Shown: positions 14,830-30,745 of the stretch, piece after piece | Layout of the letters: every line of letters begins with the position of its first letter | Numbering within the stretch: position 1 is the first letter of the stretch | Sequence record: PV112478.1 | DNA: 64,000 nt | Reading direction: 5' to 3' (one strand) | The notes under the pieces: model-generated | Database searches by the model: none | Told to the model about the DNA's origin: nothing | The model's input: the letters and a program-made list of their open reading frames with translations, nothing else | Program-made: the position numbers and the translations under genes

Positions 14830-15039
14830 GGTAGATCACCTTTTTGACGATTAGTTTATTCATAAAAACAGCATAAAGAGAGGGTCTTTCGACCCTCTCT
14901 CGTACTGACTTATCGTCAAAAGGATCTCAGTGTTTAGCTCATAAATGACTTATCGCACATCATCCTTTTCATGTTAAGGTCGCCACCGAAACATGTTTAT
15001 TCTCGGCTATACGAGTTAGCTTAATTTCCATATTTTTAA

Positions 15040-15575
15040 TACCCGATCCCTTCTACGTTGGAGAAATGGATCGAATAGGGTGACGCCCCCGGACATTTTT
15101 GCCGGCTCCTTGCACCTCTTTCGCCGGAATCCCCGGCTGAGGTCTATGGTCTATGGCCGCCTATTTTCGCTCTAAGGCGTAGGCCGCCTAAAATGACAGG
15201 CGTCATAATTAGTACCCCTCGGCCGATTCCGCGGCGCGTTTAACCGGCGGGTCGCCGAAGTCTTTGTCTCACGAGAGTTACCAATAAGTTATTGCTTATT
15301 GGACAAATCATTCGGATACGATTCCGAACTCCCTTCCTACCGAGCCTCTACTACCGAGCAGGAGTCGAACCTGCACTCTCTGTAAACAATATCACTTGAC
15401 TAGAGCAGTATTGTAAAGGTTACGTGGACTTTAAAAGTGTAGAATGGGTATCAGTTAATTTGTTGCGGCCGCATACCGGTAACTGACTTCTTCTACTAGC
15501 GCCACCACTGACTCCGGTGTCTCGCCTAGTGGCGTTGTGCGACCCATTAACTCGCACTATCTCTTTTAAGTCCAA
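15040..15575 (-). ncRNA. Candidate structured non-coding RNA(s) downstream of the tRNA cluster
   Basis: No ORF. Long stem 15426-15437/15563-15573 enclosing several hairpins, an orphan T-arm at 15358-15374 and a GC-rich 15040-15290 segment. Confidence 0.4.
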
Positions 15576-15578
15576 CTT

Positions 15579-15686
15579 TGGTTGATAGGTACCGAATCGA
15601 ACGGCTATCTCAGGCTCCCATGTTAAGGCGCCCCTCGTATGAGAGGGGGCCTAATGCCCGCGCTTTACCTTTAAGCTAGCCTATCA
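15579..15686 (-). ncRNA. tRNA-like RNA with 40-nt hairpin-containing anticodon loop, CCA end
   Basis: Acceptor TGATAGG/CCTATCA-A-CCA, D arm GCTT/AAGC, stem CGGGC/GCCTG and T loop TTCGATT. Confidence 0.7.
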
Positions 15687-15939
15687 TTGAATAGGTTCCC
15701 TAGCACTCAATGAGTATCATCTACACCAGCAGCGCCCGGTGTTTAGCCGAGATGCAATTATGCTTAAATGGGTCGTATTTAACGGCTCATTTATTCGTCG
15801 ATGATTTACGTAGGGATAACAAGGAGACATCCCCCTCAGCATGCCGAGGTCAACTTTTGCCTTAGGTCAAGATTAACTCTCCGCAACATTAAGTCGCCTG
15901 GTTAACCCCTACCTTTAGTCTAAGCAAGATGTCATTATT

Positions 15940-16029
15940 TGGCAGAGAGTGAGAGATTCGAACTCTCGGTACCCTTTCGGATACACTCCCTTAGCAGGGG
16001 AGCGACTTAAACCGCTCATCCAACTCTCT
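15940..16029 (-). tRNA. tRNA-Ser(GCU)
   Basis: Cloverleaf, CTCCC-CTGCTAA-GGGAG, long variable arm, G73, CCA. Confidence 0.93.
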
Positions 16030-16038
16030 ATTAAAATG

Positions 16039-16112
16039 CGACTCTTCCAGGACTTGAACCTGGGACCTACAGCTTAACAGGCTGCCGTTCTAACCAACTG
16101 AACTAAAGAGTC
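16039..16112 (-). tRNA. tRNA-Asn(GUU), CCA not encoded
   Basis: GCAGC-CTGTTAA-GCTGT; ends G73-CAT. Confidence 0.9.
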
Positions 16113-16118
16113 ATTATT

Positions 16119-16193
16119 TGGCGGTGCTACGGAGAATTGAACTCCGGTCTCCTCCGTGACAGGGAGGTATCCTTTCCACTAGACGATAGCACC
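16119..16193 (-). tRNA. tRNA-Asp(GUC)
   Basis: CCTCC-CTGTCAC-GGAGG, G73, CCA. Confidence 0.93.
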
Positions 16194-16201
16194 TTTTTGT
16201 T

Positions 16202-16302
16202 TGGTTGTTCCCTTCCGGATTTGAACCGGCAACCTCCTGCTAAGCAGTGGGCGGCGCAGTGGCCGCCGATGCAGGCGCTCTACCTAGTTGAGCTACGAGA
16301 AC
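16202..16302 (-). ncRNA. tRNA-like RNA with 30-nt hairpin-containing anticodon loop, CCA end
   Basis: D arm GCTC/GAGC, stem CCTGC/GCAGG, T arm CCGG-TTCAAAT-CCGG and acceptor TGTTCTC/GGGAACA-A-CCA. Confidence 0.7.
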
Positions 16303-16310
16303 ATTGTATC

Positions 16311-16386
16311 TGGAGCAAGCAGCGAGGTTCGAACTCGCGACCTATGACTTGGAAGGACATCGCTCTACCGACTGAGCTATACTTGC
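16311..16386 (-). tRNA. tRNA-Gly(UCC)
   Basis: Loop CTTCCAA, U73, CCA; one T-T mismatch in the anticodon stem. Confidence 0.9.
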
Positions 16387-16391
16387 GCTAA

Positions 16392-16466
16392 TGGCAGAAG
16401 CGCCTAGATTCGAACTAGGGGTACCGAGATCAAAGCCCGGGGCCTTAACCGCTTGGCTACACTTCT
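16392..16466 (-). tRNA. tRNA-Gln(UUG)
   Basis: CCGGG-CTTTGAT-CTCGG, G73, CCA. Confidence 0.9.
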
Positions 16467-16473
16467 ATAAAAC

Positions 16474-16557
16474 TGGTGGGGAAGGGTAGATTCGAACTAC
16501 CGAAGCCGAAGCAGCAGATTTACAGTCTGACCCATTTGACCACTCTGGAACTTCCCC
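16474..16557 (-). tRNA. tRNA-Tyr(GUA)
   Basis: CAGA-CTGTAAA-TCTG, variable arm, A73, CCA. Confidence 0.93.
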
Positions 16558-16754
16558 TGAATTTGGGACCCGATTATTTCAGCGCTGCATTCTTTACTCT
16601 CGGGCCAAGGAGCACTATTAGTTTCTTCTCAGGGCGTATGGTTTCCCTCTGAGACTTGCGCAATATTTGAACAGGTTGATTGTTGTCTTAACATTCCGGA
16701 GAGAAAGTTACAATCTTTGTTCATAATATATTGAATTACTTAAATTTTGATTGC

Positions 16755-17096
16755 CTACCGGAATTTCCCTACAGATAACCAGATATCAGCAACCAAAAGA
16801 ATTTGTCCGCCATATTGGGTGACGGTATTCCAACCATTGCGTTTAGCGGCTGCATTGATCAGTGATAAAAATTGGTCTCTCCAAGGTCCTTGGTAAATCT
16901 GAGAGTGGTGTATTATTCGTATATTATTCGAACTCTCAATCTTATTAAGTTCTTCTGTTCCCCTGATCATATCGAAAACGTCTTTCGACTTAATCAAATA
17001 AGCCGGATCGTTAATCGTTCGATCAGAGGCTAAAGGAAGACGATAAGAAATATGGTCAATGTCTTCTTGACTGTGTGCAAATGTTACGTCATTCAT
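16755..17096 (-). CDS. Hypothetical protein splitting the tRNA cluster
   Basis: 113-aa ORF with AAGGT RBS. Confidence 0.6.
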   Translation of the reverse strand: MNDVTFAHSQEDIDHISYRLPLASDRTINDPAYLIKSKDVFDMIRGTEELNKIESSNNIRIIHHSQIYQGPWRDQFLSLINAAAKRNGWNTVTQYGGQILLVADIWLSVGKFR

Positions 17097-17177
17097 TTTA
17101 CTTTTACCTTATACAAGTTAGCGGTCTAAACCGAAATAGGAAGACCAACAAAAACTGTGGGATGAATAATAATGAAG

Positions 17178-17251
<74 letters not shown>

Positions 17252-17256
17252 GTAGA

Positions 17257-17341
17257 TGGTGCCCAGGGCGGGGTTCGAACCCGCACGCGATAAAGCGAGG
17301 GATTTTAAATCCCTTGTGTCTGCCGATTTCACCACCTGGGC
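17257..17341 (-). tRNA. tRNA-Leu(UAA)
   Basis: AGGGA-TTTAAAA-TCCCT, variable arm, A73, CCA. Confidence 0.93.
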
Positions 17342-17346
17342 AAATA

Positions 17347-17422
17347 TGGTGGGTCCAGCAGGTTTTGAACCTGCGACCAAGCGATTATGAGTCGCCTGCT
17401 CTAACCACTGAGCTATGGACCC
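17347..17422 (-). tRNA. tRNA-Ile2(CAU, lysidine type)
   Basis: GGCGA-CTCATAA-TCGCT; D and anticodon arms match enterobacterial ileX. A73, CCA. Confidence 0.88.
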
Positions 17423-17474
17423 AAAAAACGATCTTTTATTAAGAGCACATAAATGTACCCTTTGTAAAATACCG

Positions 17475-17639
17475 TCAGCTCGATTGTTTCTTTTTCTTTC
17501 TGAAAGCAAGCTGCACATAAATGGCAATTGCACCAGCGAGAATAATAAGCAGGACAATATCAATCAATACACCTACCATTCGAAACAACACCAAAAAGAT
17601 GACGGCCAGTAATATTAACCAGCCGATCTTTTTCAGCAT
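17475..17639 (-). CDS. 54-aa two-TM membrane protein (below ORF-track cutoff)
   Basis: MLKKIGWLILLAVIFLVLFRMVGVLIDIVLLIILAGAIAIYVQLAFRKKKKQSS*; starts 3 nt after the TAXI gene stop. Confidence 0.7.
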   Translation of the reverse strand: MLKKIGWLILLAVIFLVLFRMVGVLIDIVLLIILAGAIAIYVQLAFRKKKKQSS

Positions 17640-20309: not shown

Positions 20310-20485
20310 TAGCGCGACCTATCTAAGAATAAGATTGGAAGTTTTATTTTATAATCTAGTGCTCTACCGGCTGAGCTATCTGCCTCCAAGAAACACTCTA
20401 TGAATGTGTCCAGGTAGGCAGAGCGGAATTCGAATCCGCGACCTCTAGAATTCTTTCCGTAAAAGAAAGAAAGTTCAGTCCGCTA
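20310..20485 (-). ncRNA. Circularly permuted tRNA mimic B (YrlA/Y-RNA-like)
   Basis: Core 20355-20449 in the order T arm (GCGGA-TTCGAAT-TCCGC), closed acceptor (TCTGCCT/AGGCAGA), D arm (GCTC/GAGC), closed by TCTAG/CTAGA. Possible outer bulged helix TAGCGGAC/GTCGCGCTA. Confidence 0.7.
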
Positions 20486-20565
20486 TTTTACTGTCTACTC
20501 TTTATCTTTAAGCGTGTGAGGCGATAAGATAAAGTTAACACTAACCATCCGAGTAGCATTATGGG

Positions 20566-20659
20566 TGCATTGATGACTGCGTCTACCAATTCCGCCATTC
20601 TCCCATAGTTTGGTGGGAGAAGAAAGAGTCGAACTTCCAGTGGGGTCATCACACCTGCA
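20566..20659 (-). ncRNA. Circularly permuted tRNA mimic A (YrlA/Y-RNA-like)
   Basis: GATGAC...GGAAG-TTCGACT-CTTTC-TTCTCCCA-CCAAACTA-TGGGAGAA-TG-GCG-GAATTGGTAGA-CGC-A-GTCATC. Confidence 0.7.
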
Positions 20660-20740
20660 ACACGGACTAACAATAAAGATAAGGTTGGCCTCAATCTTTA
20701 TTATCAATGGGCACTCGTGAGAATACCCATTACTAACACA

Positions 20741-30064: not shown

Positions 30065-30745
30065 TTAACGTTGCCAAATAGGGAGATTTCTTTTCTTCAG
30101 GTCTTTTACCCGTGACATCCAAAACCGATGACTCAGTCGATACGGATACGGTAACAATACCCGACCATTATCCACAGGTTCAATCGAGTCAGTAAAGTAC
30201 GCGTTCGGACTGGAGATCGGATAGGTCGTCACGACGACATTGGTACCTGCCTTCTGTCTCTTTTCTAAACGCCTTTGAAACCGCCGGAGCTTGTAACGGT
30301 TTGCTTTTCGTCTTTGAGGCTCTACCGCCAACCCGTAGTACTGCACAAACGCTTTGAGCGCTACAGTTAAACGAGCATAGGGAGAGAGTGCCACTTTATC
30401 CCAATCCACTACGTGCCCTGAACCATCGTGTTCTACATCCATATTCGGGAACATCTCACCGACCAACCAATACTCGCTGACACTGGTACTATAGCCCAGG
30501 GGTTGGAGCGAATCGAAGGCTTTCCCATCGACCTCAATCCACGCGTGCCAGCCGTGGTCATTCCAGACGGCGCTATAGCCTTTCTTCAGGAGCGCGACAC
30601 TCAACGCTTGTCGAACCTGATAACAGCACCCGTTACTGAGAATGAATCGACTCTCGTCTACGGTTTCGTATTTCGGTCCTGTCAGATGAAATAATGTAAT
30701 CAACGTTTTTAAGCAATCTTGTACGTACAACTGAGCTTCGGTCAT
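30065..30745 (-). CDS. Hypothetical protein
   Basis: 226-aa ORF, GGAGGAG RBS; GCC...HAW motif of unclear meaning. Confidence 0.65.
   Translation of the reverse strand: MTEAQLYVQDCLKTLITLFHLTGPKYETVDESRFILSNGCCYQVRQALSVALLKKGYSAVWNDHGWHAWIEVDGKAFDSLQPLGYSTSVSEYWLVGEMFPNMDVEHDGSGHVVDWDKVALSPYARLTVALKAFVQYYGLAVEPQRRKANRYKLRRFQRRLEKRQKAGTNVVVTTYPISSPNAYFTDSIEPVDNGRVLLPYPYRLSHRFWMSRVKDLKKRNLPIWQR

Follow-up and report, generated by a model that had tools for sequence, protein, structure and literature searches.

Element 1, a tRNA-shaped gene in the tRNA operon of the Klebsiella jumbo phage LPKP23, has an internal loop and a 6-bp GC hairpin in place of its anticodon loop, so that its anticodon stem ends in a GC-hairpin extension and not in an anticodon. 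Its structure, its operon context, and comparison with related phages lead us to think that it is probably, though by no means certainly, a working gene kept by selection, whose product would have the shape of a tRNA and be processed as one but would not decode. The DNA analyzed here (hereafter the window, a stretch of 64,000 nucleotides to which all coordinates refer) shows 100% identity to record PV112478.1, the ~300-kb genome of LPKP23, which belongs to the phiKp24/FBKp24 group. Its ORFs include chimallin, a phage tubulin, a divergent family B DNA polymerase, and an RNA polymerase beta-like subunit; because chimallin, phage tubulin, and the polymerases are all encoded here, LPKP23 is taken to be a nucleus-forming phage. 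The operon and its main parts are as follows.

14876..17625 (-): transcription unit with elements 1 and 2, between two terminator-like hairpins
17625-17603 and 14901-14876 (-): the terminator-like hairpins that bracket the tRNA unit
15940-17422: nine tRNAs called by ARAGORN (Met/Ile2, Leu, Arg, Tyr, Gln, Gly, Asp, Asn, Ser)
16202..16303 (-): element 1, a complete tRNA-shaped gene of 102 nt including the encoded A-CCA
15579..15686 (-): element 2, tRNA-shaped and of the same design as element 1

Besides the nine tRNAs and the two elements, the unit holds ORF113 and roughly 700 nt of additional non-coding RNA. CCA is encoded in most of the cluster's tRNAs. Element 1 is spaced like a member of the array, with 7 nt separating it from tRNA-Gly and 8 nt from tRNA-Asp (array neighbors are likewise 6-9 nt apart). 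Further tRNA fragments occur in the vicinity. No link to RNA was found for the operon neighbors, namely ORF113, a GNAT acetyltransferase, an NMT1/TAXI-like protein, and a DUF7873 protein.

The Rfam tRNA model (RF00005) matches element 1 at 16206-16302 (-) with 38.9 bits, above the gathering score of 29, which places it in the tRNA family (E = 1.1e-4 for the whole window, both strands and all families). The alignment has a 28-nt local insertion in the anticodon loop, in agreement with the original prediction of a tRNA body with an expanded loop. The element also lies where it had been predicted, except that its 5' T is at 16303, one base beyond the proposed start. ARAGORN makes no call at this position, but GenBank record PQ182779 annotates the coordinates as 'tRNA-OTHER', and does the same for element 2. 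A tRNA covariance model of our own (R1), run with filters off, recovered element 1 at 24.9 bits and missed element 2; it gave one false match, inside an ORF at 30485-30550. The parts of element 1, in 5' to 3' order, are listed below.

16296..16303 (-): 5' strand of the acceptor stem, UGUUCUCG, i.e. TGTTCTC(G) then (G)TA; eight layers, the innermost G standing opposite A in the window
16277..16293 (-): D arm, GCTC-AACTAGGTA-GAGC (in RNA, GCUC-AACUAGGUA-GAGC), then G; carries A14, G18G19, and A21
16271..16275 (-): 5' strand of the anticodon stem, CCTGC (CCUGC); 5/5 pairs in all sequences
16241..16270 (-): expanded 30-nt 'anticodon' loop, ATCGGCGGCCACTGCGCCGCCCACTGCTTA
16250..16267 (-): GC hairpin within that loop, 6 bp (GGCGGC/GCCGCC) with loop CACUGC; stem invariant
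16236..16240 (-): 3' strand of the anticodon stem, GCAGG, then AGGTT (AGGUU)
16214..16230 (-): T arm, GCCGG-TTCAAAT-CCGGA (UUCAAAU loop in RNA); layer 49:65 is G.A in the window and A:U in Centimanus
16206..16213 (-): 3' strand of the acceptor stem, AGGGAACA, i.e. (A)GGGAACA
16202..16205 (-): discriminator A and encoded CCA

The nucleotides that build the L shape are all there (U8, A14, G18G19, A21, and the UUCAAAU T loop). The D arm is invariant in six relatives, and the 30-nt loop shows just three single-base variants among relatives. Folded alone, the anticodon arm forms a 5-bp stem, an asymmetric internal loop of 3 nt and 9 nt, and the 6-bp GC hairpin, at -16.7 kcal/mol; a rival CUGC/GCAG pairing in this arm is just 0.3 kcal/mol worse. 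The minimum-energy fold of the full-length molecule did not recover the anticodon stem and hairpin, and its folding energy is unexceptional (z = -0.87), as is common for tRNAs. The predicted GC hairpin thus holds up, but its 5-bp drawing is better replaced by one with 6 bp and a 6-nt loop. The motif CCACUGC is repeated in the loop, which exposes single strands of 6 nt and 9 nt. A mobile or repeated hairpin can be set aside, each insert of elements 1 and 2 being unique in the window at up to three mismatches.

The acceptor stem can be drawn in two registers. In register A, that of Rfam, the molecule starts at G16302, has seven layers of which the last is G.A, and ends in A-ACCA. In register B it starts at U16303, with U1:A72, eight layers, a discriminator A, and an encoded CCA. 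Since bacterial RNase P makes use of the RCCA end, and since most tRNAs of the cluster encode CCA, register B is favored. Two layers, the innermost of the acceptor stem (7:66) and 49:65 of the T stem, are G.A in the window and are G:C and A:U, respectively, in Centimanus.

Element 2 repeats this design. The Rfam tRNA model matches it at 34.4 bits with a 36-nt insertion, and its loop is organized as follows.

15616-15655 (-): 40-nt loop
15627-15651 (-): 9-bp GC hairpin in which one C is bulged, closed by a 6-nt loop

Both elements have U1:A72, three nucleotides before the D stem, a 3'-terminal A-CCA, a mismatched layer at the junction of acceptor and T stems, and a loop that opens with AU and then enters the GC hairpin. 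All of these but the mismatched layer had been named in the original prediction as a common design (the first of them as a 5' T), rightly so; its further statement that the two sequences are otherwise unrelated goes too far, since the bodies share 67% identity and no other member of the cluster is closer to element 2 than element 1. Element 2 is conserved right up to its CCA and no further, and in Centimanus it starts 8 nt after tRNA-Asn, a spacing like that of the array. Its loop contains a three-codon mini-ORF (AUG GGA GCC UGA), which we take to be a coincidence because the stop codon is gone in FBKp24 and Centimanus.

Could element 1 nevertheless decode? The anticodon loop of a functional adaptor is 7 nt long and has U33 and, as in essentially all tRNAs, a purine at 37. 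The loop of element 1 is 30 nt long, and the base at its position-33 equivalent is C in two lineages (FBKp24 and KpLz_1_41). That no clean 7-nt loop can be recovered had been predicted, and enumeration by hand confirms it: all eight single excisions that leave 7 nt put U or C at position 37. Excision at 37/38, for example, gives AUCGGCA, with C at 37. As no excision yields a 7-nt loop with a purine at 37, and no known type of intron is present, element 1 cannot decode as encoded.

Several intron types were considered. A brute-force scan with permissive rules found the full bulge-helix-bulge motif of archaeal and eukaryal introns, a 4-bp helix between two 3-nt bulges, in neither element; since such rules gave many spurious matches in controls, only this negative outcome is used. 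A group I intron is out, because the insert of element 1 (23-30 nt) is far below the ~200 nt or more of the ribozyme core. No intron family in Rfam matched at E values up to 10. ARAGORN found no tmRNA, and the sole match to a tmRNA family, a partial one of 24 bits, is at 20377-20439, away from element 1.

An unconventional intron would be another matter. In such a scheme an endonuclease excises the hairpin insert and a phage RNA ligase or host RtcB joins the halves to give a decoding tRNA. Element 2 lends itself to this, as one excision leaves a canonical-looking AUUGGGA (anticodon UGG) or AUUAGGA (anticodon UAG), and in unrelated phage contigs discussed below, L147 and L126 for example, a hairpin is directly followed by an anticodon in register and two more nucleotides. 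Jumbo phages, moreover, often carry RNA ligases and end-healing enzymes (PMC7824862). Against it, single-excision rescue fails for element 1, with its pyrimidine at 37 in every case and the C at the U33 position in two lineages; a strict bulge-helix-bulge motif is missing from both elements; and a group I intron would not fit into 30 nt. A Pfam scan of 30 window ORFs found no RNA ligase, RtcB, kinase-phosphatase, or Ro60/TROVE gene. We know of no protein-based tRNA splicing in bacteria, and altogether consider splicing of this kind very unlikely. Intron-containing tRNA genes do resemble element 1 in having extra sequence in the anticodon loop, and annotation tools treat the two alike, but the real intron-bearing tRNAs that we recovered from metagenomes have the anticodon, a purine, and then the intron, whereas element 1 has no valid insert at 37/38.

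The stem and flanks of element 1 had been described as tRNA-Ala-like. The signature GGTAGAGCGCCTGC...GCAGGAGGT does draw mostly tRNA-Ala genes (anticodons AGC/TGC) from metagenomes, but the G3:U70 pair is absent, 3:70 being U:A in either register. The likeness to tRNA-Ala is consequently confined to the D and anticodon arms and the variable loop and does not extend to the acceptor stem.

Is the element then a relic? Each of the 13 GenBank records of the clade has both elements. These records stand for 11 distinct genomes, from genera that include Maaswegvirus and Siatvirus; a metagenomic IMG/VR contig (L023) has both elements as well. An insert unique to this isolate, the finding that would have counted against the original prediction, is thereby ruled out. 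The clade has five cluster layouts, and six of the nine tRNA genes (Gly, Asp, Ser, Tyr, Gln, and Arg) are each absent somewhere; elements 1 and 2 are never absent across the 11 genomes and five layouts. Departures from the window arrangement include these:

FBKp24: Gln/Gly fusion
Centimanus: without Asp and Ser; HNH endonuclease gene inserted
KpLz-2_45: HNH gene replaces Arg (3' part), ORF113, Tyr, and Gln
L023: without ORF113, Tyr, Gln, and Asp

All known homologs of element 1 come from close relatives; none was found beyond the clade in GenBank phages or in JGI metagenomes, and neither element has a match in E. coli genomes. Nucleotide differences from the window were counted by region.

Window vs FBKp24: elements 1 and 2, 4/210 (1.9%); canonical tRNAs, 14/622 (2.3%); downstream non-coding DNA, 107/761 (14.1%); ORF113, 72/327 (22.0%)
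Window vs Centimanus: elements 1 and 2, 10/210 (4.8%); canonical tRNAs, 28/536 (5.2%); downstream non-coding DNA, 62/765 (8.1%); ORF113, 70/327 (21.4%)

Against FBKp24 the elements have diverged about as much as the canonical tRNAs and less than the non-coding DNA (p = 2e-8) or ORF113 (p = 5e-13, both one-sided Fisher tests). The inserted loops taken alone (30 + 40 nt) have 3/70 differences, against 14% in non-coding DNA (p = 0.01). The contrast with flanking non-coding DNA is weak in Centimanus (4.8% vs 8.1%, p = 0.06). Low divergence of the elements could stem from recent recombination of the tRNA block instead of from constraint.

Element 2 of FBKp24 and Centimanus departs from that of the window at three positions: one change turns a G.U of the anticodon stem into G:C, and the other two, paired with each other, replace U..A by C..G at the top of the inserted hairpin. 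In element 1 of Centimanus, G.A becomes A:U at 49:65 and G:C at the innermost acceptor layer, U54/A58 becomes A54/U58, and the hairpin loop has one change. This pattern is suggestive in that it fits the proposed structure, though it is statistically weak. Formal covariation, for which the 4-6 distinct sequences give little power, amounts to no double-sided pairs in element 1 and one event in element 2, no better than in shuffles.

These comparisons bear on whether element 1 is a pseudogene, that is, an alanine-type tRNA gene whose anticodon loop was destroyed by an insertion or a tandem duplication and that survives only because it sits in a selected, often block-exchanged operon. The loop does contain a near-tandem repeat (GGCCACTGCGCC then GCCCACTGCTTA), the two mismatched stem layers of the window lineage would fit decay just as well, relatives differ between T and C at the U33 position, and element 1 shows no formal covariation. 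The clade is also shallow, with fast turnover of the tRNA cluster and insertions of HNH endonuclease genes, and other tRNA fragments lie close by. Decay does not readily account, however, for two elements of the same design that are never lost where six of nine real tRNAs are, for inserts of 30 and 40 nt that change as slowly as the bodies, for substitutions that keep or restore pairing, or for conservation in element 2 that stops exactly at the CCA. Related phages, furthermore, have anticodon-less bodies that are clearly designed, for instance with a UUCG-capped stem (see below). A pseudogene origin accordingly seems to us unlikely, although it deserves to be taken seriously.

More distant jumbo phages were reached via the conserved NMT1/TAXI-like gene that adjoins the operon (65-76% protein identity), which led to a set of 240-248 kb contigs resembling SPN3US and Erwinia phages. 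In the same operon position these SPN3US-like phages have other tRNA bodies that lack an anticodon loop:

L209 8358-8474 and L217 8359-8476: acceptor, D, and T arms present, and 65 nt of other structure in place of the anticodon arm
L210 4883-4963: 7-bp 'anticodon' stem with a UUCG cap
L211 3168-3242 and others: minihelices of acceptor and T arm

Pattern scans of IMG/VR gave class-I tRNA bodies with loops of 22-52 nt. Many of these matches are ordinary 37/38 introns of tRNA-Tyr, Ile, or Lys and probably come from giant viruses. Others are tRNA bodies with a hairpin in the anticodon loop on four contigs unrelated to LPKP23 (L029, L126, L170, and L147), which are assigned to tailed phages by their terminase, DNA polymerase I, and primase genes. 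In these a tetraloop hairpin lies directly 5' of an in-register anticodon:

L147: GU[GCUAGGC-UUCG-GCCUAGC]CACAU, an 18-nt hairpin
L126: AC[...GCAA...]UGCAU
L029: AC[...GCGA...]UGCGC, scoring 58 bits with the Rfam tRNA model

The layout of element 1, AY[hairpin]..UGC.., is similar to these, except that three and not two nucleotides follow UGC. No cultured relatives were found for three of the metagenomic analogs (L029, L147, and L064). The view that such elements form a class rather than an accident, put forward in the original prediction, is supported at the level of sequence by the two elements that every relative carries in its operon, by those of the distant SPN3US-like jumbo phages, and by the IMG/VR bodies on tailed-phage contigs.

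The same set of bodies helps in judging whether the tRNA part might be just a scaffold for processing and stability, the hairpin and single strand being the working part, as a small regulatory RNA or aptamer. The insert is conserved as well as the body, and its stable GC hairpin with exposed 6-nt and 9-nt strands bearing the repeated CCACUGC would suit this role. Engineered 'tRNA scaffold' RNAs are a precedent; in E. coli, a tRNA scaffold reportedly stabilizes the RNAs inserted in it. The first copy of the motif is altered in Centimanus, though, and the base before the second copy in KpXa_1. Related phages, moreover, keep the body with quite different inserts, so that the body is the constant feature. 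We therefore give the carrier function a low probability.

Returning to a non-decoding tRNA-shaped RNA as the preferred reading, how does it compare with systems already described? One parallel is with rnaC and rnaD of phage T4 (species 1 and 2), stable non-tRNA RNAs encoded within or at the distal end of the phage tRNA operon. The T4 operon has a layout like that of LPKP23 (tRNAs, the homing endonuclease gene segB, then rnaD and rnaC), and the end of rnaC is made up of a T arm and an acceptor helix that are tRNA-like. However, rnaC and rnaD have no Rfam tRNA match (the best, to tRNA-Sec, is 17.5 bits), whereas elements 1 and 2 are full cloverleaves, and the two sets share nothing in sequence beyond 7-8-mers. 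We know of no function for rnaC or rnaD. As a separate observation, a T arm and an acceptor-like helix that resemble rnaC are present downstream of element 2.

The second parallel is with the Y RNA YrlA of bacteria and phages (RF02553), which like elements 1 and 2 is a tRNA mimic with D and T arms and an acceptor-like stem, and in which an internal loop likewise leads to a further helix where the anticodon would be. YrlA is circularly permuted, its ends lying in a long stem and its acceptor stem being closed by a loop; elements 1 and 2, by contrast, have normal tRNA ends, and it is the extra helix that is closed by a loop. In keeping with this, element 1 is not permuted and scores only 11.4-22.5 bits against the RF02553 threshold of 69. 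Y RNAs of this type also have a stem that binds Ro60 and are encoded close to a Ro60 gene; the 30 window ORFs scanned contain no TROVE domain. In M. smegmatis, RNase P cleaves a YrlA whose acceptor stem has 7 bp and which also receives CCA (PMC4201824).

Y-RNA-like modules of the permuted kind are themselves encoded in the window, about 4 kb from elements 1 and 2:

20328-20455 (-): module 1, YrlA-like, 37.6 bits against a threshold of 69, E = 1e-6
~20575-20660 (-): module 2, permuted, acceptor stem UUCUCCC/GGGAGAA

The first folds as a circularly permuted cloverleaf (z = -2.73). In the second, the acceptor stem is closed by the loop ACCAAACUAU, and A-CCA directly follows the 3' strand. Module 1 overlaps the 'tRNA-Stop(tta)' called by ARAGORN; in the phiKp24 paper this tRNA-Stop(tta) appears as a 'suppressor tRNA'. 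This call has no support from the Rfam tRNA model and scores 10.2 bits with our own model; the published phiKp24 'suppressor tRNA' may therefore not be a tRNA. The presence of two Y-RNA-like modules nearby suggests that LPKP23 keeps up a whole set of tRNA mimics that lack an anticodon.

A third comparison is with cluster tRNAs of phages that are thought to counter tRNA nucleases, such as T5 tRNA-Tyr and tRNA-Lys and anticodon-loop variants (PMC10264068, PMC11555353). These defense-evading tRNAs decode, and differ by point changes in a 7-nt loop, whereas element 1 has no usable anticodon loop; the first of these papers (PMC10264068) makes no mention of insertions, decoys, or tRNA-like genes. 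A literature search found no described family of such elements. They thus extend two known kinds of RNA, the stable tRNA-like RNAs of phage tRNA operons and the tRNA mimics of bacteria, by a design that is unreported in the literature searched.

What might element 1 do? We envisage that it would be co-transcribed with the tRNAs, released by RNase P (directed by the RCCA end) together with 3' trimming, and accumulate as a stable RNA of ~102 nt that would be unable to pair with a codon on the ribosome. The non-Watson-Crick layers at 7:66 and 49:65 fall where EF-Tu reads tRNAs and should further bar it from translation, an argument drawn from tRNA-Sec and from non-proteinogenic tRNA-Gly species. 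The last step is speculative: element 1 would occupy a protein that recognizes the tRNA shape, with the hairpin and 9-nt strand as a specific handle. Candidate partners would be a host nuclease directed at tRNAs, whether of a defense system or a toxin, an enzyme that processes or modifies tRNAs, or a partner of the Ro60/RNA-repair type. Element 2 would be a second RNA of the same design. The cluster's Tyr, Asn, Asp, Arg, and Gln tRNAs are of kinds targeted by tRNA-directed nucleases. No partner protein for element 1 was found among 30 window ORFs searched with Pfam or eight searched with PHROGs. The VapC-mt4 toxin of M. tuberculosis cuts tRNAs at ACGC or ACUGC (PMC4705866), and ACUGC occurs twice in element 1; this stays a lead only, because the first copy is ACUGU in Centimanus and the host is unrelated. 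A role of element 1 as a decoy or adaptor for a tRNA-binding protein is speculation.

As far as can be judged from sequence, element 1 is a genuine feature, is conserved, and belongs to a broader phenomenon that is unannotated. The tRNA clusters of phages have come to be viewed as counter-measures to tRNA-cutting nucleases of bacteria, and annotation pipelines drop or mislabel tRNA-shaped genes that have no anticodon. If functional, the elements would add a second layer to this conflict, one of shape mimics rather than replacement adaptors, and could illuminate T4 rnaC and rnaD. Since they are short, discrete, and deletable, the question can be addressed directly by phage genetics and small-RNA sequencing. 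More tentatively, and with the odds rather against so broad a reading, nucleus-forming and related jumbo phages of Enterobacterales may keep a toolkit of anticodon-less mimics (an unpermuted new family plus Y-RNA-like modules) that act as decoys or adaptors against host tRNA-directed immunity and toxins, or that recruit RNA repair or decay enzymes. Were this true, it would be a counter-defense strategy distinct from that of cleavage-resistant decoding tRNAs.

Hairpins within tRNA bodies are also found in unrelated tailed-phage contigs of IMG/VR. In L029, L126, L170 and L147 a tetraloop hairpin lies directly 5' of an in-register anticodon; three of the four share the opening AC CCGGG and contain UGC or CGC. 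No cultured relatives of these contigs were found when L029 and L147 were searched. One example is:

L029 5152-5244: hairpin-bearing tRNA body, tailed-phage contig, IMG/VR

The tRNA operons of SPN3US-like jumbo phages contain several further RNAs of tRNA shape that lack an anticodon loop. The NMT1/TAXI-like protein encoded next to these operons is 65-76% identical to that of the window. These RNAs, and three matches to STnc100, are:

L209 7777-7922: tRNA-shaped RNA without anticodon loop
L209 8358-8474: tRNA-shaped RNA without anticodon loop
L217 8359-8476: tRNA-shaped RNA without anticodon loop
L210 4883-4963: tRNA-shaped RNA without anticodon loop; UUCG tetraloop capping a 7-bp 'anticodon' stem
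L211 3168-3242: tRNA-shaped RNA without anticodon loop
L208 7404-7618: STnc100 match
L218 7407-7621: STnc100 match
L220 7053-7240: STnc100 match

The three contigs matching the STnc100 sRNA family do so above threshold (72-84 bits), just downstream of the NMT1/TAXI-like gene (75-76% protein identity), in place of a tRNA cluster.

Among the relatives of the window phage (L003-L007 and the IMG/VR contig L023) the tRNA clusters turn over rapidly. Centimanus and KpLz-2_45 carry inserted HNH endonuclease genes in theirs, the Gln and Gly tRNAs are fused in FBKp24, and Asp, Ser, Tyr, Gln and Arg tRNAs have each been lost in different lineages. Element 2 is the downstream tRNA-shaped gene of the window operon. 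The features in and near this part of the operon are:

15687-15939 (-): non-coding stretch of 253 nt between tRNA-Ser and element 2
~15340-15480 (-): T arm (15358-15374) and possible acceptor helix
13142-13618 (-): GNAT-family acetyltransferase gene, ~1.3 kb past the operon terminator

The 253-nt stretch is confined to the window's sub-lineage, being missing in FBKp24, Centimanus and L023; in Centimanus 8 nt separate tRNA-Asn from element 2. Downstream of element 2, the sequence GCAGG-UUCGACU-CCUGC makes a canonical T arm. The segments UUACCGG and UCGGUAG could pair into an acceptor helix flanking it and enclosing ~100 nt. The arrangement resembles that of T4 rnaC, in which a minihelix of acceptor and T arm carries a large insert. 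In the operon's non-coding tail, 14972-15016 (-) weakly matches the Pistol self-cleaving ribozyme (score 19.5 bits, threshold 34.5 bits, E = 0.79), probably by chance. Some GNAT toxins acetylate charged tRNAs; our analysis found no link between the GNAT gene and the tRNA-like RNAs.

Outside the operon lie the following:

20328-20455 (-): circularly permuted tRNA-like module, from Rfam YrlA match and fold
20413-20496 (-): ARAGORN call 'tRNA-Stop(tta)'
~20575-20660 (-): second permuted tRNA-like module (T arm, acceptor stem, D arm, outer stem)

The first module runs from outer stem to T arm, loop-closed acceptor stem and D arm. It matches the Y RNA family YrlA at 37.6 bits (E = 1e-6), under the threshold of 69, and has a fold z of -2.73. 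A Pfam scan of 30 window ORFs revealed no Ro60 gene. The tRNA-Stop(tta) call overlaps this module's T arm, and the paper on the phiKp24 genome describes the same feature as a suppressor tRNA. The call has no match to Rfam tRNA and scores only 10.2 bits (E = 0.16) on our own tRNA model; it is therefore probably not a genuine suppressor tRNA. In the second module the T arm reads GGAAG-UUCGACU-CUUUC. The loop ACCAAACUAU, in which A-CCA comes immediately past the acceptor 3' strand, closes an acceptor stem of 7 bp (UUCUCCC/GGGAGAA), and the module also has a D arm of leucine type and a long outer stem. It looks like a Y-RNA-type RNA and a candidate for cutting by RNase P.
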